Under the pieces are notes generated by a model. It was given only the letters and a program-made list of their open reading frames with translations. It was not told the DNA's origin and made no database searches. This document shows, piece after piece, positions 7,903 to 31,799 of a stretch of 64,000 nt of DNA. Each line of letters opens with the position of its first letter. The stretch's first letter is position 1. The position numbers and the translations under genes are program-made. The stretch is from the sequence record NC_061440.1, one strand, 5' to 3'.

Positions 7903-8282
7903 GTGGATTATTCCCGCATCGCGTTATCGATCAGAAAGCAGGTTTCGTATTCGTTGTGCAGCCCGCCGACGAAAACGATGAAGACGCGGTTGAAGCGGCT
8001 AAGGAAGTTGAAGCCGTTCTGATCGAAGCGTGGCCGACTGCGCCGTCTGAACTGTCTGTCGAAGACGTGCGTGACCCAGAAGAAGCCGAACTGGTGTTTG
8101 CTGATATCATGCAACTGCTGGAAGAAGCAGAGCGTGAAGAAGCAAATCAGATCGTGGTTAGTGGTATTCTGATTGTCGGCGATCTGGTCATCGTCAACTG
8201 TATGTTGACTGGTGAAGACCTGTCTGACGAAGAAGACGAAGACGATGATTCCGTTGAAGCCGACGAAGAAGACTTCGCTTAA
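7899..8282 (+). CDS. highly acidic hypothetical protein
   Basis: AGGAG RBS, GTG start, strongly D/E-rich. Confidence 0.7.
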   Translation: MSGLFPHRVIDQKAGFVFVVQPADENDEDAVEAAKEVEAVLIEAWPTAPSELSVEDVRDPEEAELVFADIMQLLEEAEREEANQIVVSGILIVGDLVIVNCMLTGEDLSDEEDEDDDSVEADEEDFA

Positions 8283-8290
8283 CGTCTGTC

Positions 8291-8312
8291 GTGAGGACCT
8301 TCGGGTCCTCAT
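8291..8312 (+). promoter_or_regulatory. stable hairpin with C(UUCG)G tetraloop
   Basis: gtgaggacc-ttcg-ggtcctcat; no U-tract; overlaps the ATG of the next small ORF. Confidence 0.55.
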
Positions 8313-8445
8313 GAATCTAACCGAGACTAATCCGGTATACGCAGCAAAGTTCCTCACGAACAAAACTGACGACGAAGCACGGTCGTTACTTGCTGCCCTT
8401 AAAAACGATGAGGTAACATCACTGTACGATCTAATGGTGACGTGA
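8311..8445 (+). CDS. small hypothetical protein (44 aa, not in ORF track)
   Basis: MNLTETNPVY...; fills the gap, with TGATG coupling to the next gene. Confidence 0.5.
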   Translation: MNLTETNPVYAAKFLTNKTDDEARSLLAALKNDEVTSLYDLMVT

Positions 8446-8942
8446 TGGAAAATAGTACCGCGGACGAAAGTCCTAATAGCGCAAGGCATCGCATATTCTT
8501 CAAGCAGCCGAAACGAGTACCTCCCTTCGATACAGCTTTCGTTCGTTCATCTAATCGTGAAGGTCTGAAAGTCCTCCTATCGGCTGCCCCTGAACATTGT
8601 CAGATCATTTTGTTTTCGGACGGCCTCGGCATCGCTTCTGCCATGAAACGCCTCTTTAAGCGCAACTTCAAACTCTGTTCGCAAGCTCTACAATTCGACC
8701 TTAGGACACTTACGTTCACAGGTCAAGTCGTCTATCAATTTACTCGCGGTGGCGGTGTGTATGACCCTCTGGCCAGATACTTCTGCGCTGGCGATAGTCA
8801 CCTGCATGAACTCGCACAGACGACGAAGATTGCCGAAACCGAAACGGACACCATTGATATGTTCTGTTGCGGCTTGGCGTTCCATCGCGTGTTGCTTGAG
8901 CGTGGTCGAGGGCGTTCTATCGTTTTCGCGGAGGAACAATGA
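8445..8942 (+). CDS. hypothetical protein
   Basis: ORF in tightly coupled operon. Confidence 0.65.
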   Translation: MENSTADESPNSARHRIFFKQPKRVPPFDTAFVRSSNREGLKVLLSAAPEHCQIILFSDGLGIASAMKRLFKRNFKLCSQALQFDLRTLTFTGQVVYQFTRGGGVYDPLARYFCAGDSHLHELAQTTKIAETETDTIDMFCCGLAFHRVLLERGRGRSIVFAEEQ

Positions 8943-9967
8943 GTAGATCGTTCGCCTCTATCGGGAAGACTCCCGTTGCAGGTGCTACCCAGAAGATGAA
9001 GATCAAGTACGGCAAACAGCCGATGCTTCACATTGTTGATGCGTCAAACTGGATGTGCCGTGCTTACTTCGCTACGAATAAGAACCCGACCTATGCCAAA
9101 GACGGTACGCCTACTTATGGCTTACGCCAGTTCATGAACATGGTCAAGGACCTGATTGATATTGCCGCGAAAGACCCTAACGGTGCATATCTCGCATTCT
9201 GCTTCGACCCAGGCTCTAACGAGACTTGGCGTTATCGCGCTATCCAGCAATGGACAGCCGAGAACAAGAAGAAGTTTGTGCGTCAGGTCTTCAAAAAGAG
9301 TAGCGATTACAAAGGCAATCGTGATCGCTCTCTGACAAAAGAGCTGGGCGTCCAGATGCAGTTGGCCCGCGACATTCTGGAAATGGCTGGCTACTATGTT
9401 GGCCTGAAACGTCCGTATGAGTGTGATGATTTGGTTGGCACGTTAAGCGACCGCTTCAAGCACAAGTACCTGATCAAGCTCTATTCGCGTGACAAAGACT
9501 ACGTGCAACTTGTTGACCACAAGAACGTGGAGCTTATCATGCAAGCGCAGTCGAATGCAGCCGAGCGTCGCTTCACGCTTAAAACCGCTCAAGGATTCTT
9601 CGGTGTACCTCCAGACCGTGTTATTGATATGCTTGCCCTCTCTGGCGATAGCGTCGATAACGTACCTGGGATTCCTGGCATTGGCGAAAAGACTGCTGCC
9701 GAGTTTATCAACCGCTTCGGTGGTGCTCTCGAACTTCGAGAAGCGTTACTCAGTGGTGAACTCAAATCGAAGGCCGGTTGGGCGAAAGCTCTTATCGGGG
9801 AAATTCCTTCAATGGATATTGAATTGCAAATGGAGCTTGTAACTATCGACCGTAACGTACCGACGCTTCCACGTAAGCTCGATGCGTTCGTGCCTGGCCG
9901 CCCAGACATAAAAGCGTTGAAAGCAACTATGAAACGCCTGGGTCTGCCTCACTTATTACACGTCTAG
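8939..9967 (+). CDS. 5'-3' exonuclease / flap endonuclease (PolA N-terminal, T5 FEN-like)
   Basis: IVDASN, YKGNR, ECDDLVGT, SRDKDYVQL, GDSVDNVPGIPGIGEKTA (H3TH) motifs. Confidence 0.93.
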   Translation: MSRSFASIGKTPVAGATQKMKIKYGKQPMLHIVDASNWMCRAYFATNKNPTYAKDGTPTYGLRQFMNMVKDLIDIAAKDPNGAYLAFCFDPGSNETWRYRAIQQWTAENKKKFVRQVFKKSSDYKGNRDRSLTKELGVQMQLARDILEMAGYYVGLKRPYECDDLVGTLSDRFKHKYLIKLYSRDKDYVQLVDHKNVELIMQAQSNAAERRFTLKTAQGFFGVPPDRVIDMLALSGDSVDNVPGIPGIGEKTAAEFINRFGGALELREALLSGELKSKAGWAKALIGEIPSMDIELQMELVTIDRNVPTLPRKLDAFVPGRPDIKALKATMKRLGLPHLLHV

Positions 9968-11117: not shown

Positions 11118-11450
11118 ATGAACACAATACGCGGATTTGATTGGCTCTTTTACGGAGATGGAACCGATAGTGGCCAACACTCAATTGTAAGTCTTGTTGT
11201 CGATCAGACAGCAAAATCAATACAGGTAGAAGTAGAGCCAGGATGCGCCGTACCTGTAATTCAAGCGATTCAGGAAAATGATGTCCTGTACGCTCAGGCC
11301 GAAGCTGGCCTCTATCGTATTCGTTACAGTTGCTCGTTCCGAACGTTGGATGCTAACGTCTTCCCGCCCACCAAGACTAACTTCCAGTTGAAGTTGATCG
11401 CGTGTGACTTCCTTGCGGGTGTTACTACTCACGATAAACTTCTGGACTAA
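11118..11450 (+). CDS. hypothetical protein
   Basis: ORF in operon. Confidence 0.65.
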   Translation: MNTIRGFDWLFYGDGTDSGQHSIVSLVVDQTAKSIQVEVEPGCAVPVIQAIQENDVLYAQAEAGLYRIRYSCSFRTLDANVFPPTKTNFQLKLIACDFLAGVTTHDKLLD

Positions 11451-12266: not shown

Positions 12267-13037
12267 ATGAGCAACGTTGATAAAACAATGCCACAAGGTC
12301 GCTGGGAATTTAATGAGCCAGTTGCTGCTGTCTTCGATAACATGTTGCAAAACTCCATTCCTTCGTATGACCGTATGCGCGACCTGACCTATCGTCTTGG
12401 TCGCCAGTTCGTAACTCCAGGTACGGCCATCGTTGATTTGGGCGCATCGCTCGGTCGCGCTATCGAACCATTCTGTGCTGAGTTCGGCGAGTACCATTAT
12501 ATTCATGCTGCTGACCGTCCCGAGCCAGATCGTGAAATCGGCAATCATTACTGCTGTTATGAAGTCGCACCGGCAATGCTTGAGCGTCTTCGTCAAAACG
12601 AAGTGCTGGTCAAGGCCAAAGCGAAAATCAGTAGTGAGTCGCTGGTTGAAGTCGATACTTTCCGCTTCGACGAGCAGGTTGAGTGCTCCCTGATTCTGAG
12701 TGTGCTGACTCTCCAGTTCACTCCTATCGAACATCGCCAACACATTCTGGAGAAAGTGTACGACTCTCTGGAGAAAGGCGGTGCTTTCATTCTGGTTGAG
12801 AAAGTGTTGGGTGACGACAACTTCCTTGACCGTTTGCTGGTAGACACCTACTACGGCATGAAGGGCGACAACGGTTATTCGCAAGAATCTATTGCGACTA
12901 AGCGCAAAGCTCTCGAAGGCGTACTGGTGCCTGTGAAAGCTGCATGGAACGAAGAACTGCTGCGTAAAGCAGGCTTCAACCGTGTGGAGTGTTTCTACCG
13001 CGACCTGAACTTTGCTGGATGGATCGCAGTCAAATAA
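12267..13037 (+). CDS. cmoA: CmoA-like carboxy-S-adenosylmethionine synthase
   Basis: Colinear with E. coli CmoA as recalled: W.F.E.VA.VF..M...S.P.Y, DLGASLG, TLQF, GG..IL.EK, NGYS, and KR..LE with the catalytic Arg equivalent retained. Confidence 0.88.
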   Translation: MSNVDKTMPQGRWEFNEPVAAVFDNMLQNSIPSYDRMRDLTYRLGRQFVTPGTAIVDLGASLGRAIEPFCAEFGEYHYIHAADRPEPDREIGNHYCCYEVAPAMLERLRQNEVLVKAKAKISSESLVEVDTFRFDEQVECSLILSVLTLQFTPIEHRQHILEKVYDSLEKGGAFILVEKVLGDDNFLDRLLVDTYYGMKGDNGYSQESIATKRKALEGVLVPVKAAWNEELLRKAGFNRVECFYRDLNFAGWIAVK

Positions 13038-13048
13038 GGTAAAACGAA

Positions 13049-14104
13049 ATGAGCGTAAGTGGTGATATTTATAACATCCCTCAACCGTTCGCCATGTATT
13101 GTGGCAACTGTGAAACTCGTGCTCAGGCAAAAGTTGCCTCAGGCACAATTGAATGGGCGTCAGAGAAAGTCTGCTGCGTTGTCGCCGACGATAACGGCCT
13201 GTTCCCTGATGTGCCTCACATCAACATTGCAAGCGTCCATGCTACAGATGCGCGTACTCTGGTAATCGGCTGTGCACCGTTCGGCGGTAAGATTGACGAG
13301 CACATGGACCGCACTATTCGCAGTGCTATCTATCGTGGTCTGAACGTTGCTGCTGCAATGCACAATCGTCTGGCAGACAATCCTGAATACGTTGCGCTGG
13401 CTGAACAGTACAATGTCAAGCTGTACGACTTCCGTCACCGTCCTGACGCGTACCCACTCGGTACTGGTGAGAAGCGCAAAGGCATTCGTCTGCTGACTGT
13501 CGGCACAGATAGTTCCTGCGGTAAAAAGTTCACGACGCTGACGCTACACCGTGTTCTGAAAAAGATTCACGACGACACGGTGTTCTGCTCAACTGGCCAG
13601 ACTGGTTTCCTGATCAGCAATTGCGGCATCAACAACGATACGCTGGTAGCTGACTTCCTTGCTGGTGCCGCTGAGTCCTTATCGCCTGACGGCCCTGCTG
13701 ATCGTATCTATCTGATCGAAGGCCAGGGCGCAATCACTCACCCAGCGTACACTGGCGGCAGCATGAGTCTGATTGCTGGCTCGCAGCCTGACTACTTCAT
13801 CATGTGTCATGCGTGGGGACGTAAGAATCAGCTCGGTGTTAAACGCGCACCTGACCTTGCTTTCGAACTGAAGGCTAATCTGGATGCAGCAGCCATTCAC
13901 GGTCTTACTCCTAAGTATCTGGGCATCAGTATCAACTTCTCCGAGAGCGGCCTGACCATCGAAGAACAAGACGCTGAGATGTGCGCTCTGGAAGACCTGT
14001 ACGACATTCCAGTGTTCGACCCGTCGCGTGATAGTATCGTCATCAAAGAGATGGCCCATCATCTCAAGACGACTGTAATATTCAGGAGCGAGTCGAATGG
14101 CTAA
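13049..14104 (+). CDS. DUF1611 family P-loop protein (DgcN-like)
   Basis: GLNVAAAMH, LLTVGTDSSCGKKFT, STGQTG, DFLAGAAE, IEGQGAITHPAY, GSQPD motifs typical of DUF1611. Confidence 0.85.
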   Translation: MSVSGDIYNIPQPFAMYCGNCETRAQAKVASGTIEWASEKVCCVVADDNGLFPDVPHINIASVHATDARTLVIGCAPFGGKIDEHMDRTIRSAIYRGLNVAAAMHNRLADNPEYVALAEQYNVKLYDFRHRPDAYPLGTGEKRKGIRLLTVGTDSSCGKKFTTLTLHRVLKKIHDDTVFCSTGQTGFLISNCGINNDTLVADFLAGAAESLSPDGPADRIYLIEGQGAITHPAYTGGSMSLIAGSQPDYFIMCHAWGRKNQLGVKRAPDLAFELKANLDAAAIHGLTPKYLGISINFSESGLTIEEQDAEMCALEDLYDIPVFDPSRDSIVIKEMAHHLKTTVIFRSESNG

Positions 14105-14966
14105 ACATCCTCTTCGCAAGCTGTTTGAACAGCACGTAAAGAAAGAGGTCAAAGCCAAAGAAGTGGCCGTTCTGCTTTCGAGTGGCCTCGACGGTTTGGT
14201 TAGCGCACTCGCGGCGCATGATCTCGGCATCAAAGTTCACGCGTTCACGTTCCAGATGGGTGATGAACAGAGCTTCGATAGCAAACACGCTCGCATCGTC
14301 GCAGAGAAGATGGGATGGGAGTTCACTCTGGTTAAAGTGCCGACGTCTGACACTGCAATCGCTAAAGGGTGGAAACAACTCCATGCAAACTTCCGCTGCA
14401 TCAAAAAGCGTGATTATGAGTGTGCGTACCCTATGGTGTACTGCTACAAAGCGATCAAAGATGCTGGCCTGAAATACGTGCTTAGTGGTCTGGTGGCTGA
14501 CGGTTACTTCCTGTATAACCGTAACACGCACATCCAGAAAGTAAGCGGCCCTCACTCTATCGCTGAAAAGTATCACGCGTACCGCACCGAATACTTCCGA
14601 CCGTGGATCAAAAGCGGTAAGAAGTCGCTCGGCGTTGACGGCTATAACCCGAGCGGTATGCTGCAACACGAATTGCTGTGTGACCACTTCGGCCTTGTTC
14701 ACGTTAACCCGTGGATGCAGCCGAAAGTATTTGATTACTTCATCAAGTACACATGGCAAGAGCTAAACATGCCCAAGCAGAAAATGCCAATAACAACGGC
14801 TTGGGCAGATCACATCGCAGTTGTTGGGCATCGTCCACATCGCGGCTATCAAACAGAAGCTGGAGTGCCTGCGCACTTCGAACGCTTACTGGATAATCCT
14901 GAGATCAACTTCAACGGCCGCAAGCGCATCATGGACGTGGCCCGCGATTGGTCAACGAGGACTTAA
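14097..14966 (+). CDS. asparagine-synthetase-like ATP-dependent amide ligase (no glutaminase domain)
   Basis: PP-loop VLLSSGLDG, SGLVADGYF (cf. SG.GADE.F), C-terminal VNPW...V and K.P motifs. Confidence 0.78.
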   Translation: MAKHPLRKLFEQHVKKEVKAKEVAVLLSSGLDGLVSALAAHDLGIKVHAFTFQMGDEQSFDSKHARIVAEKMGWEFTLVKVPTSDTAIAKGWKQLHANFRCIKKRDYECAYPMVYCYKAIKDAGLKYVLSGLVADGYFLYNRNTHIQKVSGPHSIAEKYHAYRTEYFRPWIKSGKKSLGVDGYNPSGMLQHELLCDHFGLVHVNPWMQPKVFDYFIKYTWQELNMPKQKMPITTAWADHIAVVGHRPHRGYQTEAGVPAHFERLLDNPEINFNGRKRIMDVARDWSTRT

Positions 14967-14967
14967 T

Positions 14968-15582
14968 ATGTTTGTACACATCATTGACGGTGGTATTGGT
15001 GGGTCTTATGTTGCTCACCAGTTAATGGAGGCTGGGTTTAAATGTCGCGTTCACTCTCCAAACAACAATCGTGTTCGGGCAGTACATGCGCCGTACCCTT
15101 CGCTTTCTATGGGTCACACTGAACAGGAAATTGAAAAGCATATCGGTAACGTGCTCGGTACGTTTCGCGGTATCTTCCTGATCAGTAGCTACGTGGGTTC
15201 GTTGATTGCAAATCAGATGATTGACCAGTGCGGCCAAAGCGGCAACATCATCACCTGTGACGATCTCAAATGTGGTTCAATACCTGTTGTTGCTTCATCC
15301 ATTTCTGTAAACGTCTATAAGAAGCAAAGACAACTGGCACGTATCTCGCATCGCCTGAAACACTTCGACATTGACCACGAGTTCATTGTCGCGGATAAGG
15401 CTGTGCGTTTTGCTGCTGGTTCGGAGTACGATGAGCACGATGCTCGAAAGGAGTTTAACAACAACGCCAAATTCCTTTCGAGTCCGTCAATGATTGTTGC
15501 TGCACACAAACTCGGTGTGAAGAACAGTATGTACCATAACTATGCGGGACTGGTGCGCGAGTTCCTTGAGAGGCGCCAGTAG
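14968..15582 (+). CDS. hypothetical protein, weak glutamate racemase (MurI)-like N-terminus
   Basis: IIDGGIGG..V (cf. FDSGVGG), APY..S..EQEI, LISSYVGS (cf. IACNTAS); catalytic Cys appears absent. Confidence 0.4.
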   Translation: MFVHIIDGGIGGSYVAHQLMEAGFKCRVHSPNNNRVRAVHAPYPSLSMGHTEQEIEKHIGNVLGTFRGIFLISSYVGSLIANQMIDQCGQSGNIITCDDLKCGSIPVVASSISVNVYKKQRQLARISHRLKHFDIDHEFIVADKAVRFAAGSEYDEHDARKEFNNNAKFLSSPSMIVAAHKLGVKNSMYHNYAGLVREFLERRQ

Positions 15583-15871: not shown

Positions 15872-16327
15872 ATGAATCTGTTTTCTATTTTAAAGCAACA
15901 GGTAAAGAAAGCGCTGTCCACCGAAGCGAATCACGAACCAGAGATTCGTGCGTTGTTCGACTGGCGCTACTCTGTTGAGATCAAAGGCCAGATGTACATT
16001 GTTGGTAAGACTGGAGCAAACACTTGCTTCTATGTCGAGCCTGGTACTGACGAGCCGATTGCGTGTTACCCTGATGCGCTGCTGGAGAAGATTGATCAGT
16101 GGGGCGGAAGCAAGTACGTGACGTATGCCATTTACTTCAAGCGTTTCGAAAGCCCTGTCGCTGAGAATATCAAAGACCTGGAGAAAGCGCTGAAAGGCAA
16201 ACCGAAGTCGTACAAGAAAGGCTACTTCATCTGTGGCGTGACGCCGAAAGGTAAGCGTGTGAAACTCTATCGCTTGCAGCAAGGTCTGTCTGGTATGCAG
16301 TGGGTAGCTGTCGAACCTAAATCGTAA
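15872..16327 (+). CDS. hypothetical protein
   Basis: GAGGG RBS, ORF in operon. Confidence 0.7.
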   Translation: MNLFSILKQQVKKALSTEANHEPEIRALFDWRYSVEIKGQMYIVGKTGANTCFYVEPGTDEPIACYPDALLEKIDQWGGSKYVTYAIYFKRFESPVAENIKDLEKALKGKPKSYKKGYFICGVTPKGKRVKLYRLQQGLSGMQWVAVEPKS

Positions 16328-18020: not shown

Positions 18021-18863
18021 ATGACAGTAATCAGCCCAATCCGATATCAGGGCAATAAGCGAAGCCTTATCCCGATTATTCTTGAGCACACGCCTTCTGT
18101 GCAGGACTGCCCTCGCATGGTGGACGTGTTTGGTGGTAGCGCTACTGTTTGTGCGAACATGCCGCAGAAGTTTCGCGTTTATAACGAACTGAGTCCTCAG
18201 GTGTACGATATCGTTAAGATGTTAGTCGAACAGGACCCGAAGAAAACTCTTGGTCAGGTCAAGCGACTGGTCAAACATTGGTGCCTGACTAACAGCAACG
18301 AAGCGAACTACGATGCGTTTCGTACCGTCGTCCAGAAGAAGCGCACTGCTATCTTGCATTATGTTGCACATCGCCACGCTCATTCGAACATGCTGCGATT
18401 CAACCAGCAAGGTGTGTACAATGTAGGCTTTGGTGATCGTGGTCTGATTGGTAAGTTCGATGAACTGGAACACGAACTCACTACATTCCACAAACATATG
18501 CAGGGCGTTCACCTGACGAACATGAAGTACGGCAAGCTGCTTGGTCGCTTAGGCCACCAGCTAGACTGCAACACGTTCTGCTACTTCGACCCTCCGTACC
18601 TGGCGAGTGGTGCGATGCAGTACGGTAAGTGGACAGAGCAGAATGAACGCAACCTGCTTACGACTCTGGAGCAGTTGAATCGTCGCGGTGTTCCCTGGAT
18701 GTTGAGCAACGTTATCGAGCACAGAGAGTTCTCAAACGATCTGCTAAAGCGTTGGTTAAAGAAACATGCGACAACCGTGCTCTATCCAAACAAAAGCTAT
18801 GCGATGAACAATGGCCAGAGCGGCTCGCATAGCACGATTGAAATTCTGGCAATGAACTATTGA
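18021..18863 (+). CDS. Dam-like (D12 class) DNA adenine methyltransferase
   Basis: RYQGNK, DVFGGS (motif I), YFDPPY (motif IV), N-terminal layout of Dam/T4Dam. Confidence 0.9.
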   Translation: MTVISPIRYQGNKRSLIPIILEHTPSVQDCPRMVDVFGGSATVCANMPQKFRVYNELSPQVYDIVKMLVEQDPKKTLGQVKRLVKHWCLTNSNEANYDAFRTVVQKKRTAILHYVAHRHAHSNMLRFNQQGVYNVGFGDRGLIGKFDELEHELTTFHKHMQGVHLTNMKYGKLLGRLGHQLDCNTFCYFDPPYLASGAMQYGKWTEQNERNLLTTLEQLNRRGVPWMLSNVIEHREFSNDLLKRWLKKHATTVLYPNKSYAMNNGQSGSHSTIEILAMNY

Positions 18864-20343: not shown

Positions 20344-20731
20344 CGCCAGTGATGCAGAAGCGCGGGCGTACTATCAGAAACAACATGAACGCGCCGAAGC
20401 CACCATGCGAGAAATCTGGGCGTTACGTGGCTGGACGATTCGTTGGGAGTGGCACAACGGCATCTGCGATGATTGTGAGTTCCTGTTCGACGAAACAGGC
20501 AAGCAGTTGTGTCCGTACCACGATGCCATTCCGCAAGAAAGTCAGGTGGCGTACAATCTTGAGAAGCATCGCCTCAATGTGACGTACACCAAGAAATCTG
20601 TAAAATTGATTAACAAGCAAGACCCAAATCCAGTTGAAGGTAAAGCTGACACGTTACGCCAGGCTTATATCAATTGGCTGTTGGCCCTTGAGAAACAAAA
20701 AGCTGAGGAACAAAAGTGCGCCACGACTTAA
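20321..20731 (+). CDS. hypothetical protein with Cys cluster
   Basis: CDDC...CPYH. Confidence 0.6.
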   Translation: MYLPLGDNASDAEARAYYQKQHERAEATMREIWALRGWTIRWEWHNGICDDCEFLFDETGKQLCPYHDAIPQESQVAYNLEKHRLNVTYTKKSVKLINKQDPNPVEGKADTLRQAYINWLLALEKQKAEEQKCATT

Positions 20732-21237
20732 CCGAACTCCCTATTTCCGTAGAGCAAGCAGAGCACATCATGGCCAGTGTGTTTACTCTGGCTGGTGCTT
20801 CTAAATCGAAGCGTCGTGCGACTGCTGCAATGCTCATTCACTTCCACGACGGCTTCCCTACGATTATCAGTAGCGGTGTCAACGGTACTATGCCTGGCGA
20901 AAGCAACGTCATGGAAACTCCTGACTTGACGCTCTCACTTAACACTGTTATCCATGCAGAGGTGAACTGCCTCAATCGCATGGAAGAATACAGTCTGTGG
21001 GCAAACGAACAGGACATTCTGTTCTGTACCGATTCGCCGTGTCCGAACTGTCTGGCTGATCTCGAAGCCGAAGGCGTGAAGACCGTTGTGTATGCGCGTG
21101 AGTATCGACTAACTGATCATCTGGACGCATCTTCGATTAAGATGTTCTGTCTGGATATGAAGTCCGTTGAGCACCGTATGCTTCGCGGTATCGAGCGCAT
21201 GAACGAAGTTATCGCAACAACACCAGCGTCTGAATAA
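20716..21237 (+). CDS. dCMP deaminase family protein
   Basis: SGVNG, HAEVNCL and SPCPNC zinc motifs. Confidence 0.88.
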   Translation: MRHDLTELPISVEQAEHIMASVFTLAGASKSKRRATAAMLIHFHDGFPTIISSGVNGTMPGESNVMETPDLTLSLNTVIHAEVNCLNRMEEYSLWANEQDILFCTDSPCPNCLADLEAEGVKTVVYAREYRLTDHLDASSIKMFCLDMKSVEHRMLRGIERMNEVIATTPASE

Positions 21238-25600: not shown

Positions 25601-25904
25601 CCTGCTGGTAAAGATGTTCGGCCAGAACAAGCCATTCATCGTCGTGCGCCGTGACGCTATCGTGGAGAACGAAAAGCGTTTCGGTGATCGCGTTTACTTC
25701 TCTAATGGCGTTAACACCGTCACTGTGCCAAACATTCAAGGGCTTGACCTGGGTGATAAGCTCTACATTGCAGAAGACGGCGATGTGTATGAGTGGCATC
25801 CTCACTTCGAGCGTCCTTACGAAGCAGTATCGAACAACCAGACAGAAGCTCTGGCGTTTGGTCTGCATCCCATTGTCTTCCACACCGACACACGGAACAG
25901 CTAA
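25560..25904 (+). CDS. hypothetical protein
   Basis: ORF coupled to thymidylate synthase by TAATG. Confidence 0.6.
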   Translation: MPTPVILLKQQTRDLLVKMFGQNKPFIVVRRDAIVENEKRFGDRVYFSNGVNTVTVPNIQGLDLGDKLYIAEDGDVYEWHPHFERPYEAVSNNQTEALAFGLHPIVFHTDTRNS

Positions 25905-27001
25905 TGTCACAACCACTTGATTTACGAAACCCGAACCACTACGAACTGTACTCTCTCCATAGCGTGGACGAGCAGTATATCAACCTGTGCGATGCAATCA
26001 TTGCTACTGGTACGCAAGAGTCCGATGCTGGTCGCACCGACGATACGTGGACGACTCTGATTGGCGTTGGTTTCCAGTTGCAGAACACGCACATTGCTTT
26101 CCCTGCACTGCTGTCCGCACGTAAGAACTGGAGCGCAGCCGTCGATGAGATGTGCTGGATGGCTCGCGGTGAAACGAACATCAACACTCTCGGCTCTAAG
26201 ATCTGGGACGAGTGGGCAGATGAAAGCGGTGAGTGCGGTCCAATCTACGGCGAGATGTGGCGTCGTTGGCCTGACATTAAAGCGTTCTTCGACTACACGC
26301 AGCCTATGGCGTCTTGCCCTACTGCCGATGTTATTCGTGTGCGTGACGAAATTCTGCGTATGCGTCAGGACGGCTACATCGAAACGCAACTGACTGACGG
26401 TCGCATCCTGTTTGAAGGTGAGATTGACCAGTTCGCTAACGCTCTGTATCACATCGAAAACCGTTCGCGTTCTCGCCGCATTCGTGTGCAGGGTTTCAAC
26501 CCAAGCTATGTGAACATGCAGGGTCTTCCTCCGTGTCACACTGAGTTTGAGTTCAACGTAACGAAGTCCACCAAGTACGAACAGGCGCAGGCCGATGCTC
26601 GCGGTCAGACGGTAGCGCAGGACAGTCTGCATATCACTGTCACCATGCGCAGCAACGACTGCCTGCTGGGGCGTCCTTTCAACATCATCGGCTACAGTGC
26701 AATGCACCAACTGATTGCGAAGTGGGCTGGCTTGAACGTTGGTGGCTTTACGCTGAATACGACGAACACCCACCTGTACGATCATCACCGTGAAGCATAC
26801 GCTAAACAGCGTGAGCAATGGATGACGTTGCGTGAACGTATGCAAACAACTGGCGAGCCTGTGAAATATCCTGTGCTCGAAATCTCCGATGATGTTATCG
26901 GTCTGACAGCTAAAGAACTGCTGGACAACGTTAACATCGACTGGTTCGAGCTGGTGGACTACAGCCCGATGCCAGCAGTAAAAGGACGTGTGACCAAATG
27001 A
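25904..27001 (+). CDS. thyA: thymidylate synthase
   Basis: GPIYGEMWR, RSRR, LPPCH, MRSND..LG.PFN (dUMP-specifying Asn), HLYDHH. Confidence 0.93.
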   Translation: MSQPLDLRNPNHYELYSLHSVDEQYINLCDAIIATGTQESDAGRTDDTWTTLIGVGFQLQNTHIAFPALLSARKNWSAAVDEMCWMARGETNINTLGSKIWDEWADESGECGPIYGEMWRRWPDIKAFFDYTQPMASCPTADVIRVRDEILRMRQDGYIETQLTDGRILFEGEIDQFANALYHIENRSRSRRIRVQGFNPSYVNMQGLPPCHTEFEFNVTKSTKYEQAQADARGQTVAQDSLHITVTMRSNDCLLGRPFNIIGYSAMHQLIAKWAGLNVGGFTLNTTNTHLYDHHREAYAKQREQWMTLRERMQTTGEPVKYPVLEISDDVIGLTAKELLDNVNIDWFELVDYSPMPAVKGRVTK

Positions 27002-28969: not shown

Positions 28970-29668
28970 ATGGCAAAAATTGCTAAAACAAAGGAAGGGA
29001 AAAAGAAAAGCGCGATGAAGTTTGACTTGAAAACGCTCAAGACTTCACAACTGAAAGGCGCTGATTACAACCCTCGTTTCATTACAGACAGCCGCCTGAA
29101 AGCACTCGAAAGTTCTTTGGGTAGCTTTGGCGATCTGTCTGGCATCGTCTTCAACAACAGTGTCAAAAGCGGCGTATTGATCTCTGGCCACCAGCGTCTG
29201 AAATCCATCGACGGCTGGAAGACTCGCATTGAGATTCAGAAAGCCTCCGACCAACACGGTACCGTAGCTCTGGGTTACATCCACGCTACGCACCCGAAGA
29301 AAGCCGAGAAGGTTATCAGTATCCCGTTGCGTATCGTTAACTGGACTGATAAGAAAGCCGAGTACGCTGCGAACATCGCGGCGAACGCGCACGGCGGTGA
29401 GTTCGATAACAAGAAACTCGCCAAGCTGGTGGAGAAGCTGGACTTGACCACCATCAAGCCTCAGTTGCTGGGTCTTGACCCACTTGAGATTCGCGGCCTT
29501 CAACAAAAGCTGAAAGGCCAGGCTGCGGTTGTAGCTCAAGAGCGTGTCGGTAAAACTACAGGCCAGATGAACGGCAGTAGCGGTGCGTTCAAAGAGTATG
29601 GTACGGACGAAGTAGGTGAGAGTCTGAACTGCACCTGCCCGCGCTGTGGATTTAAGTTCGAGGGATAA
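28970..29668 (+). CDS. ParB/Srx-like N-terminal domain protein with C-terminal Zn ribbon
   Basis: LKGADYNPR, SL..FG, ISGHQRL, AANIAAN..GGEFD, CPRCGF. Confidence 0.82.
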   Translation: MAKIAKTKEGKKKSAMKFDLKTLKTSQLKGADYNPRFITDSRLKALESSLGSFGDLSGIVFNNSVKSGVLISGHQRLKSIDGWKTRIEIQKASDQHGTVALGYIHATHPKKAEKVISIPLRIVNWTDKKAEYAANIAANAHGGEFDNKKLAKLVEKLDLTTIKPQLLGLDPLEIRGLQQKLKGQAAVVAQERVGKTTGQMNGSSGAFKEYGTDEVGESLNCTCPRCGFKFEG

Positions 29669-29669
29669 T

Positions 29670-31799
29670 ATGATCATCAAGCCGCCTACTATGAAGGAAA
29701 TCAACAAGCTGGATAAACCCTGGCGTGGTATGAGTTTCTTCGCAGGTTGCGGTGGATCTTCTACCGGTCACAAGATGGCCGGTATCAACATCCTGTTGAG
29801 TAACGAGTTCGTGGATAGTGCCCGCGAGTCTTACGAAGCAAACCATCCGACTACTAAAGTGCTGCCGCATGATATTCGTCGTCTGGACCCGAGCAAGCTC
29901 ATGCGTTATTGTGGCTTGGCGAAAGGCGAACTGGATTTACTTGACGGCAGTCCTCCGTGCTTTACCGAAGACACCATCATTCATACAGCAGACGGCATGA
30001 AGTTCATCTCGGACATGAATGTCGGCGATCAAGCAATGACCTCTGTTGGTCGTTACTTCCCTGTGTACGATACTATGGTTCGTCCGTATGTCGGCACGAT
30101 GCACAAAATCGAAACTCTGCTGGGCGCAAACAACGCTACACCAGAGCATCCGTTCTTTGTCAGACGCAGCATTCCTACTGGCGGCTACACTGACCCGTTC
30201 TGGTGTGATGCGAAAGACGTTCAGGAAGGTGACCTGTTAGGTAGCCCGCGCACTACGCCTGACATGGGACTCGACGTGTATCAGTCTCAACTCGATCAGC
30301 TGCCGAAGCAGATTGCAGAGTGGAGCACATTCCCTGAGTTCTGGTGGATGGTTGGACACTGGTGTGATCGCGGTTCGATTGAAACAGTGAGCGGTGTTGA
30401 AGTCGTTAGCTTTGAGTCGCACTCAAGCCTCGAAAACGCAATGATTGAGCAGGCGTTTGACGCGCTGAAAATCAGCAGCCTGAACCGTATCGACACGATG
30501 ACAGCACAACGCAAAACGTTCCGTATCGTTATGGACGCAGAGCTGGTGCAGTTCTTACGCCGATTCGTCAGTCAGGGCAACAACAAGTTCTCTCGTCGTC
30601 TGCCTGCGATTGTCTTCCACCTGACAGTCGAATTGAAGCAACAGTTCATTCTCGGTTGTGCCGGTCATGACTATGTGACTGGTATGGGAACAGGCTTGGC
30701 GATCACCTCAGATAGCCGTCGCTTCCTGATTGAGCTGAACTACCTGTGCTGTTCTGCATTCAACCGACCGCTGTTCGATGGTCTGACTTGGGGCGACGTT
30801 TACTTCGGCAGCCCGATGACTCCGCGTGATCGTAACAGTGTTAAGCCTCTCATTGGCTTCCTGTTCCTGCAGGACGAACACAACTTCTTCCACGAGTTCG
30901 ATGACGCTGACCCGCATTTGTGGGTAGAAGTGATTGAGAACCTCGCGTATCAGGCGACATGTGACGTGTACAACTTCTCCGTTGAGACGGATGAAACATA
31001 CGTTGCAAACAGCATGGTCGTTCACAACTGCAAGGGCTTCTCTACTGCAGGTGTGAAAGAAGAAGGCTGGGGCAAGGAAGTTAAATACAGCGATAACAAG
31101 TATCAGCAGGTTGATGACCTGTTCGATCAGTATTGTCGTATGCTGGAAGGCATGAAGCCGAAGGTGTTCACTGCGGAAAACGTGAGTGGCCTTGTGAAGG
31201 GCGCATCGAAAGGTTACTTCCTTGAAATCATGAAGGAGTTCGACCGAATAGGTTATTACGTTCGAGCACCTATGCTTAATGCTGCGTGGCTTGGTGTGCC
31301 TCAATCGCGTGAGCGTATCATCTTTATGGGTGTACGCAAAGACGTTGCACACGCACTGGGTCACAAGACGGCTGCGGCCGCTGTGCCGAATGTTGTTCCG
31401 TGTGACAGTATGGCATTCCTTGCCGATGCTCTGCCGCATATTCTGCGATACAAGTCCACGAAGAAAGATATCATCACCTATCTTCCTGCGATGAACGGAC
31501 CTATGCCAACGATCACTGCTGCCGACGCCATTGCGTATGAGACCGCGCGATTCTCATCGGCTGGCTTCGTCGAGGACAACAAAGGTCATCGCCGTAAACT
31601 GACCATTGACGAACTCAAAGTGATATCGGGTTTGCCCTCAGACTACAAACTGAAAGGCAAATTCGAAGAACAGTGGGAACGTCTTGGTCGTATCTGTGTG
31701 CCTGCAATGACACACGCAGCGGCTAAAGCGCTCATCGAACACGTCCTGATTCCTTACGCGAAGAAACGTAAGAAGAAGCCAGGCGATATCTTTAAGTAA
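29670..31799 (+). CDS. C5-cytosine DNA methyltransferase homolog, intein-interrupted; predicted carboxymethyltransferase (CmoX-like)
   Basis: Motifs I FAGCGG, IV GSPPC, VI ENV, VIII PQSRER, IX RKLTIDE; motif X reads QWERLGRICVP instead of Q.GN.V. Confidence 0.9.
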   Translation: MIIKPPTMKEINKLDKPWRGMSFFAGCGGSSTGHKMAGINILLSNEFVDSARESYEANHPTTKVLPHDIRRLDPSKLMRYCGLAKGELDLLDGSPPCFTEDTIIHTADGMKFISDMNVGDQAMTSVGRYFPVYDTMVRPYVGTMHKIETLLGANNATPEHPFFVRRSIPTGGYTDPFWCDAKDVQEGDLLGSPRTTPDMGLDVYQSQLDQLPKQIAEWSTFPEFWWMVGHWCDRGSIETVSGVEVVSFESHSSLENAMIEQAFDALKISSLNRIDTMTAQRKTFRIVMDAELVQFLRRFVSQGNNKFSRRLPAIVFHLTVELKQQFILGCAGHDYVTGMGTGLAITSDSRRFLIELNYLCCSAFNRPLFDGLTWGDVYFGSPMTPRDRNSVKPLIGFLFLQDEHNFFHEFDDADPHLWVEVIENLAYQATCDVYNFSVETDETYVANSMVVHNCKGFSTAGVKEEGWGKEVKYSDNKYQQVDDLFDQYCRMLEGMKPKVFTAENVSGLVKGASKGYFLEIMKEFDRIGYYVRAPMLNAAWLGVPQSRERIIFMGVRKDVAHALGHKTAAAAVPNVVPCDSMAFLADALPHILRYKSTKKDIITYLPAMNGPMPTITAADAIAYETARFSSAGFVEDNKGHRRKLTIDELKVISGLPSDYKLKGKFEEQWERLGRICVPAMTHAAAKALIEHVLIPYAKKRKKKPGDIFK
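29958..31028 (+). mobile_element. intein (357 aa) with degenerate LAGLIDADG endonuclease, in the catalytic PC motif
   Basis: SPP/CFTEDT start, block B NATPEHPF, ends VVHN followed by Cys(+1), the catalytic cysteine. Confidence 0.93.

Follow-up and report, generated by a model that had tools for sequence, protein, structure and literature searches.

We consider it likely that gp018 (MPK63_gp018) of Erwinia phage pEa_SNUABM_22, a jumbo myovirus in the genus Alexandravirus with a genome of 265 kb, encodes an ATP-dependent amide ligase of the CmoY family that forms AMP and pyrophosphate (PPi) and acts on the phage's own DNA. The window analysed is a stretch of 64,000 nucleotides from sequence record NC_061440.1; between positions 11400 and 16400 it shows 100% identity to the phage genome, and window and genome coordinates are the same. 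Judged by sequence, gp018 is not an orthologue of the characterized ligase SpCmoY and belongs instead to a sister clade, which is coupled to a DgcN-like protein of the DUF1611 type. The amine that it would join to DNA is probably of the amino-acid type, but not plain glycine.

The CmoA/CmoX/CmoY pathway was demonstrated in Synechococcus phage S-B43 (Yang et al., Nat Commun 2025, PMC12783734). In this pathway CmoA produces carboxy-S-adenosylmethionine (carboxy-SAM), and CmoX, a C5-methyltransferase homologue with an SPPC motif and Arg350, makes 5-carboxymethylcytosine (5cxmC) in DNA. SpCmoY, a glutaminase-less asparagine synthetase homologue, then ligates glycine to the 5cxmC carboxylate in an ATP-dependent reaction that was shown in vivo and in vitro, uses double-stranded DNA and requires no other protein for amide formation (PMC12783734). 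BLASTP aligned gp018 with SpCmoY along the full length (33% identity over 276 aa, E 3e-49); each consists of one synthetase domain and lacks a glutaminase, and in the phage database the S-B43 CmoY was the top match of gp018 outside Erwinia and Dickeya phages. The two proteins are of one length class (289 aa for gp018, 271 aa for SpCmoY), share the asparagine synthetase fold and a set of invariant residues, and are both accompanied by CmoA and CmoX. A sequence-only reading of this DNA had put gp018 forward as a candidate CmoY-type ligase, and the proposal is supported by the full-length SpCmoY homology, by a CmoA gene two genes upstream, by a CmoX homologue with the SPPC motif and the arginine, and by relatives that hold these genes in one operon. 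By analogy with SpCmoY, we infer that 5cxmC in DNA is the acyl substrate and that the chemistry is AMP-forming. The use of an amine in place of glutamine-derived ammonia would fit the missing glutaminase domain of gp018.

The gp018 open reading frame starts with ATG, encodes 289 residues and is annotated as 'hypothetical protein'. An AGGAG Shine-Dalgarno sequence lies 9 nt 5' of the start, which overlaps the stop of the preceding gene gp017 by 8 nt. Pfam Asn_synthase (PF00733) matches residues 6-138 with profile positions 2-132 (E 5.5e-14, 53 bits against a cut-off of 21), and this is the sole Asn_synthase match in the 265-kb genome. From the NCBIfam model asn_synth_AEB (TIGR01536) only positions 235-388 align, corresponding to the synthetase half, and the score of 56.4 bits lies far under the equivalog cut-off of 267.1; likewise PRK09431 scores 32 bits against a cut-off of 499. 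An AlphaFold2 model built on 52 homologues reached a mean predicted local distance difference test score (pLDDT) of 96.2 and a predicted template modelling score (pTM) of 0.92. All 289 residues of this model align only with the C-terminal synthetase domains (chain residues ~207-524, Z 20-22.6) of beta-lactam synthetase, human ASNS, carbapenam synthetase and E. coli AsnB, the stretch covered in AsnB being residues ~207-504; Foldseek returned E 4e-10. Other PP-loop enzymes, LarE, argininosuccinate synthase and NAD synthetase among them, reach only a second structural tier with Z ~11-12. Because a sequence search against PDB chains gave nothing at E <= 1, gp018 is tied to solved proteins by structure comparison only.

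No N-terminal nucleophile (Ntn) glutaminase was found in gp018: the protein begins with MAKHPL rather than Met-Cys and has no GATase match in Pfam, and the DNA 5' of it is a different gene in another frame that leaves no room for such a domain. The open reading frame, the Pfam match and the superposed model thus bear out what had been read from the letters alone, namely a 289-aa protein consisting of the PP-loop synthetase domain with SSGLDG and SGLVADG motifs and lacking the glutaminase, and the structure prediction that had been suggested as a check returned the synthetase-domain fold. In common with asparagine synthetase B and the beta-lactam and carbapenam synthetases, gp018 has this fold (~255 aligned residues), the PP-loop and presumably acyl-adenylate chemistry. 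It differs from these class II amidotransferase-type synthetases in lacking any N-terminal glutaminase or glutaminase-like domain, in its low sequence identity (17-19%) and in its presumed substrate, a base in DNA. The absent Ntn domain and the scores under the equivalog cut-offs speak against a glutamine-hydrolysing asparagine synthetase B. QueC, NAD synthetase and other PP-loop ATP pyrophosphatases do not fit either, as their family scores remain under the Pfam cut-offs (QueC 20.3 against 22 bits, NAD_synthase 16.2 against 21) and the fold is only second tier.

Codon differences between gp018 and its counterpart in phage pEa_SNUABM_3 comprise 99 synonymous and 46 non-synonymous changes, showing that the gene is under purifying selection. 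The protein is basic, with an isoelectric point (pI) of 9.4 (9.4-9.7 in its clade), which is compatible with DNA binding, whereas SpCmoY is acidic (pI 5.8).

Features of the window that bear on the proposed ligase system of pEa_SNUABM_22
Feature	Position	Strand	Description
gp016	12267..13037	+	CmoA homologue (carboxy-SAM synthase); TIGR00740 E 9.6e-43; 30% identity to SpCmoA, E 7e-29
gp017	13049..14104	+	DUF1611/DgcN-like; Rossmann-like N-domain and P-loop C-domain; obligate neighbour of the gp018 ligase clade
gp018 (MPK63_gp018)	14097..14966	+	Glutaminase-less ligase of asparagine synthetase fold, predicted to be AMP-forming; CmoY family, DUF1611-coupled clade ('A clade')
PP-loop SSGLDG, gp018 residues 28-33	14178..14195	+	S28, G30 and D32 invariant in both clades
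SGLVADG, gp018 residues 130-136	14484..14504	+	Second nucleotide-site motif of the asparagine synthetase fold; G131 and D135 invariant
Clade-specific insertion of ~13 residues, around gp018 residues 167-181	14595..14639	+	Absent from all SpCmoY-type proteins in the alignment
Clade-specific conserved block GHRPHRGYQTEA, gp018 residues 244-255	14826..14861	+	K-x-H-x-N-L-Q-L in the SpCmoY clade
gp021	15872..16327	+	Conserved basic 151-aa protein with GK(T/G)GANT motif
gp046	28970..29668	+	ParB-like, immediately upstream of CmoX; on contigs L012 and L016 a homologue likewise stands before CmoX
gp047	29670..31799	+	CmoX-type DNA cytosine C5-carboxymethyltransferase homologue, intein-interrupted
Intein, ~357 aa, gp047 residues ~97-453	29958..31028	+	Hint_2 96-140, Intein_splicing 140-453

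The only C5-methyltransferase of the genome is gp047, and of all PDB entries the crystal structure of SpCmoX, 8YF3, matches it best (E 1.4e-53, compared with 1.7e-17 for M.HaeIII). We compared the two extein halves with SpCmoX by local alignment without joining them. The protein has the SPPC motif, and its motif X 'ERLGRICVP' aligns with 'ERVGRMVPP' of SpCmoX, in which the arginine is R350. With both CmoX hallmarks described in PMC12783734 present in gp047, alongside CmoA, the genome therefore has the genes for making the substrate of a CmoY-type ligase. The intein is inserted such that the +1 cysteine after ...VVHN becomes the catalytic cysteine of SPPC, and the enzyme would therefore be active only after protein splicing. 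Metagenomic CmoX relatives on contigs L012 and L016 have no intein. ParBc-domain proteins, which gp046 resembles, occur on many CmoX contigs (PMC12783734).

Three unrelated metagenome contigs carry a gp018-type ligase and CmoX in the same operon. On L016 the order is ParB-like, CmoX, DUF1611, ligase, CmoA and a gp021 homologue; on L012 it is ParB-like, CmoX, CmoA, GT-B-like glycosyltransferase (GT), DUF1611, alanine-racemase-like, ligase and gp021 homologue; and on L018 CmoX, which is cut by the contig end, is followed by GT, DUF1611, racemase-like, ligase, CmoA and gp021 homologue. The methyltransferases of all three operons have SPPC and ER[LVI]GR. Since these relatives hold both genes in one operon, the functional link between ligase and CmoX is much stronger than the adjacency of CmoA alone would make it.

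To place gp018 within the family, we used an alignment of 19 gp018-type and 120 SpCmoY-type proteins. Thirty-eight positions are conserved to at least 90% in both groups, including the PP-loop, and a 52-sequence alignment has 20 positions invariant across both clades, including S28, G30 and D32; K104, E108, G131, D135, R163, K229, H248, R275 and R277 belong to both sets. A further 13 positions are conserved in each group but differ between them, for example S29/G, R105/T, R142/K, R246/K and Y251/L (gp018 group/SpCmoY group). The PP-loop has the form S-S-G-x-D-[GS] in the gp018 clade as opposed to S-G-G-x-D-S in the SpCmoY clade, and the conserved GHRPHRGYQTEA block may be part of the amine pocket. 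In a ligase tree rooted on the Rivsvirus-type ligase the gp018 group is monophyletic (18/18 members, support 0.986) and sister to the SpCmoY group, where the borderline search match P0027 is also placed. In a word-index protein search 21 clusters proved to be related to gp018, with identities of 34-100%, and their contigs provided the independent contexts considered below. When the species genomes of 185,579 bacteria and archaea were scanned with a motif-based pattern, no gp018 relatives were retrieved, which suggests that the family is phage-restricted.

The gene that overlaps gp018, gp017, is the partner that sets this clade apart. It contains both DUF1611 domains according to Pfam, matches the NCBIfam model DgcN with E 2e-83 and 280 bits (equivalog cut-off 480), and is ~40% identical end to end to PDB entry 7XRJ (E 5e-51), an entry that a preprint, in citing it, attributes to a D-glutamate acetyltransferase. 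The chemistry of DgcN is taken here from the NCBIfam name, this preprint citation and one review-type sentence. The phage proteins are full-length homologues of DgcN (7XRJ) and retain the P-loop GTDxSxGK as well as the IEGQG, QPD and CH motifs. In contrast to DgcN, gp017 is phage-encoded, lies inside a DNA-modification module, has no adjoining DgcA-type racemase and scores under the equivalog cut-off. Its acidic pI of 5.6 is compatible with a small-molecule enzyme.

DUF1611 adjoins the ligase in 7/7 independent contexts of the gp018 clade. In the phage database, 34 records have a gp018-type ligase (at least 82% identity) and 34 have DUF1611, both sets being made up of 32 Erwinia and 2 Dickeya phages. 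SpCmoY-type loci, on the other hand, had DUF1611 in 0/81 cases (S-B43, L017, L020, L021, one ENA contig and 76 IMG/VR loci), while CmoX stands beside the ligase in 59 of the 76 IMG/VR loci. Across the loci examined, the gene is thus always paired with gp018-type ligases and never found with SpCmoY-type ones. The gp018-clade ligase that has diverged furthest (38% identity) adjoins a 192-aa protein (L013:6193-6771) that matches the C-terminal P-loop domain of DUF1611 only, and a ThiF-family gene lies ~3 kb upstream. On contig L014, a 302-aa GNAT-family acetyltransferase (8192-9100) is encoded two genes downstream of a gp018-clade ligase, in addition to DUF1611. Two SpCmoY-type loci have an open reading frame of 369-434 aa without Pfam match that overlaps the ligase start (L020:3728-5032 and L021:3895-5004); no similarity was detectable between these two, nor between either of them and the GT-like genes that accompany gp018-clade ligases.

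Within Alexandravirus the cassette occurs in three forms: DUF1611 and ligase (pEa_SNUABM_22, AD1, Alexandra), GT, DUF1611 and ligase, or GT, DUF1611, racemase and ligase. In sister phages (pEa_SNUABM_3, L007:2034-5259; L023, L024 and L025) a GT-B-like gene precedes DUF1611 and a racemase-like gene lies between DUF1611 and ligase. The racemase-like proteins retain the pyridoxal phosphate (PLP)-lysine motif and the GYG tyrosine, and the GT-like neighbors, 405-420 aa in length, have weak matches of the GT4/GT1 type. The ligase of Rivsvirus pEa_SNUABM_5, like those of the related Erwinia jumbo phages Y3 and Yoloswag, is also a glutaminase-less Asn_synthase protein and occupies the same genome position downstream of CmoA. 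In pEa_SNUABM_5 (L008:3044-5387) CmoA shares 76% identity with gp016, whereas identity between the adjacent ligase and gp018 drops to 25%, and no DUF1611 gene stands next to it. The ligase cassette has thus been swapped between otherwise syntenic jumbo phages.

Yang et al. anticipate 'alternative amine substrates' for other ligase clusters (PMC12783734); DUF1611, racemase, glycosyltransferase, acetyltransferase and intein are not mentioned in that paper or its supplements. gp018 has residues and an insertion specific to its clade as well as exclusive partner genes, all of which argue that its amine is not simply glycine. Positive charge is kept at two positions, as the conserved lysines K133 and K222 of SpCmoY-type proteins correspond to R142 and R246 in the gp018 clade, suggesting that the amine still bears a carboxylate. 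As the partners include homologues of a D-amino-acid acyltransferase and of a racemase, we favor D-amino-acid chemistry; a D-amino acid or a diamino acid could serve, with a D-amino-acid-derived amine as the leading, speculative guess. In the pathway that we propose, carboxy-SAM would be made by gp016 and the spliced gp047 would put the carboxymethyl group on C5 of cytosine, giving 5cxmC. The PP-loop site of gp018 would adenylate the 5cxmC carboxylate, and attack of the amine on the acyl-adenylate would form the amide, with the chemistry shown for SpCmoY and glycine. gp017 might prepare the small molecule or cap a leftover amino group by acyl transfer, and any order of the gp017 and gp018 steps is likewise speculative. 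An α-N-acylated amino acid could not be the nucleophile, therefore the simplest schemes are a diamino acid, of which one amine is ligated and the other acylated, or acylation of a different group once ligation has taken place.

Taken further, the DUF1611-coupled clade might build an undescribed cytosine hypermodification, in which 5cxmC is amidated with a D-amino or diamino acid, the leftover or a precursor amino group is N-acylated by the DgcN-like enzyme and, in the sister phages, the adduct is also glycosylated by the GT-B-like protein, resulting in a graded series of D-amino-acid-containing bases across Erwinia and Dickeya jumbo phages. This extended reading is speculative and more likely to fail than to hold. 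The amine would be, for example, D-Ala or D-Ser in the phages with the racemase-like gene, and phages like pEa_SNUABM_22 would draw a diamino acid with a D-center from the cell-wall precursor pool of the host. Several points weigh against the preferred reading itself, a CmoY-family ligase with an amine other than plain glycine. Searchable literature on Alexandravirus, AD1 or PaBG phages holds gene lists only and no report of DNA modification. In pEa_SNUABM_22 a distance of 15 kb separates the ligase from CmoX, and the SSGLDG PP-loop deviates from the SGGxDS consensus, though it is kept within the clade. Acetylation of the α-amino group would destroy the nucleophile of the ligase, so that any role of gp017 would require a second amino group or post-ligation acylation. 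Finally, the replacements K133→R142 and K222→R246 would leave any carboxylate-bearing amine, including glycine, compatible.

Among the alternatives, the one that survives best is that gp018 catalyzes the same reaction as SpCmoY, ligating glycine to 5cxmC, while gp017 is functionally unrelated or acts elsewhere. The sister position of the two clades, their common architecture and the K to R exchanges that preserve the charge of the SpCmoY positions are all in its favor. This reading is nevertheless improbable given the 13 differently conserved positions, the conserved insertion and the GHRPHRGYQTEA block, the strict and exclusive occurrence of DUF1611 with the gp018 clade, and the racemase-like and glycosyltransferase-like genes between or beside DUF1611 and ligase in relatives.

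Less probable still, gp018 might use free ammonia and yield 5-carbamoylmethylcytosine, as an ammonia-dependent version of a glutaminase-containing ligase. Asparagine-synthetase-fold enzymes can use ammonia, as is established for AsnB. Moreover, another ligase cluster has a glutaminase domain and is presumed to amidate (PMC12783734). The closest characterized relative, SpCmoY, uses glycine however, and a simple primary amide as product would hardly account for the racemase, acyltransferase-like and glycosyltransferase-like partners, making this route very unlikely.

We give equally little credence to an activity on a small molecule or nucleotide instead of DNA, for example AsnB-like side-chain amidation of a gp017 product such as an N-acyl-D-acidic amino acid. 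The fold family works mostly on small molecules, and the overlapping gp017 and gp018 could be a two-step small-molecule pathway, but the linkage to CmoX and CmoA in the metagenome operons would then be left unexplained, SpCmoY acts on double-stranded DNA, gp018 and its clade are strongly basic, and the family looks phage-restricted. A two-step relay, with a thioester formed by the ligase and its acyl group then passed on to a D-amino acid by the DgcN-like protein, was set aside as the main model since SpCmoY forms the amide alone.

The preferred reading, a CmoY-family ligase with an amine other than plain glycine, builds on an enzyme family and a pathway that are already known; what our analysis adds is a defined ligase clade, present in cultivable phages, whose DgcN-like partner is obligate and whose racemase-like and GT-like companions are optional. 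The carboxymethylcytosine 'handle' system was first described in December 2025, and its authors noted ligase clusters with unassigned amines. Our analysis places cultivable Erwinia and Dickeya jumbo phages, 34 sequenced isolates with a gp018-type ligase, in one such cluster, and some relatives of these phages are in use in fire-blight phage cocktails. They offer a testable entry to new DNA base chemistry and possibly to the first D-amino-acid-containing DNA modification. The cassettes also bear on how modifications diversify by cassette exchange under restriction pressure from the host, and in practical terms the ligases are attractive for joining chosen amines to DNA.

Among the neighboring genes, gp021 has homologues directly beside the CmoA or ligase genes in the three metagenome operons and is also found in Rivsvirus, Yoloswag and Yersinia phage fHe-Yen9-02, so it is possible that it is a sixth or further component of the system. 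Its AlphaFold2 model is confident, with a pLDDT of 89; for gp021 the ESM Atlas gave no usable match, Foldseek nothing below E 0.1 and a wide search with VIA a best Z of 6.9, which is within noise. A promoter and terminator scan of the region from 11 to 17 kb performed no better than on shuffled sequence. The 204-aa gp019 (14968-15582) starts 1 nt after the gp018 stop; it is kept in Alexandravirus and weakly (24%) in Rivsvirus, and is absent from the metagenome operons compared. Elsewhere in the window there are more nucleotide and DNA-modification genes: gp026 (18021-18863) is a D12-class N6-adenine methyltransferase, gp031 (20716-21237) is annotated as dCMP deaminase, and gp042 (25904-27001) is a thymidylate-synthase-family protein that is unusually long at 365 aa.

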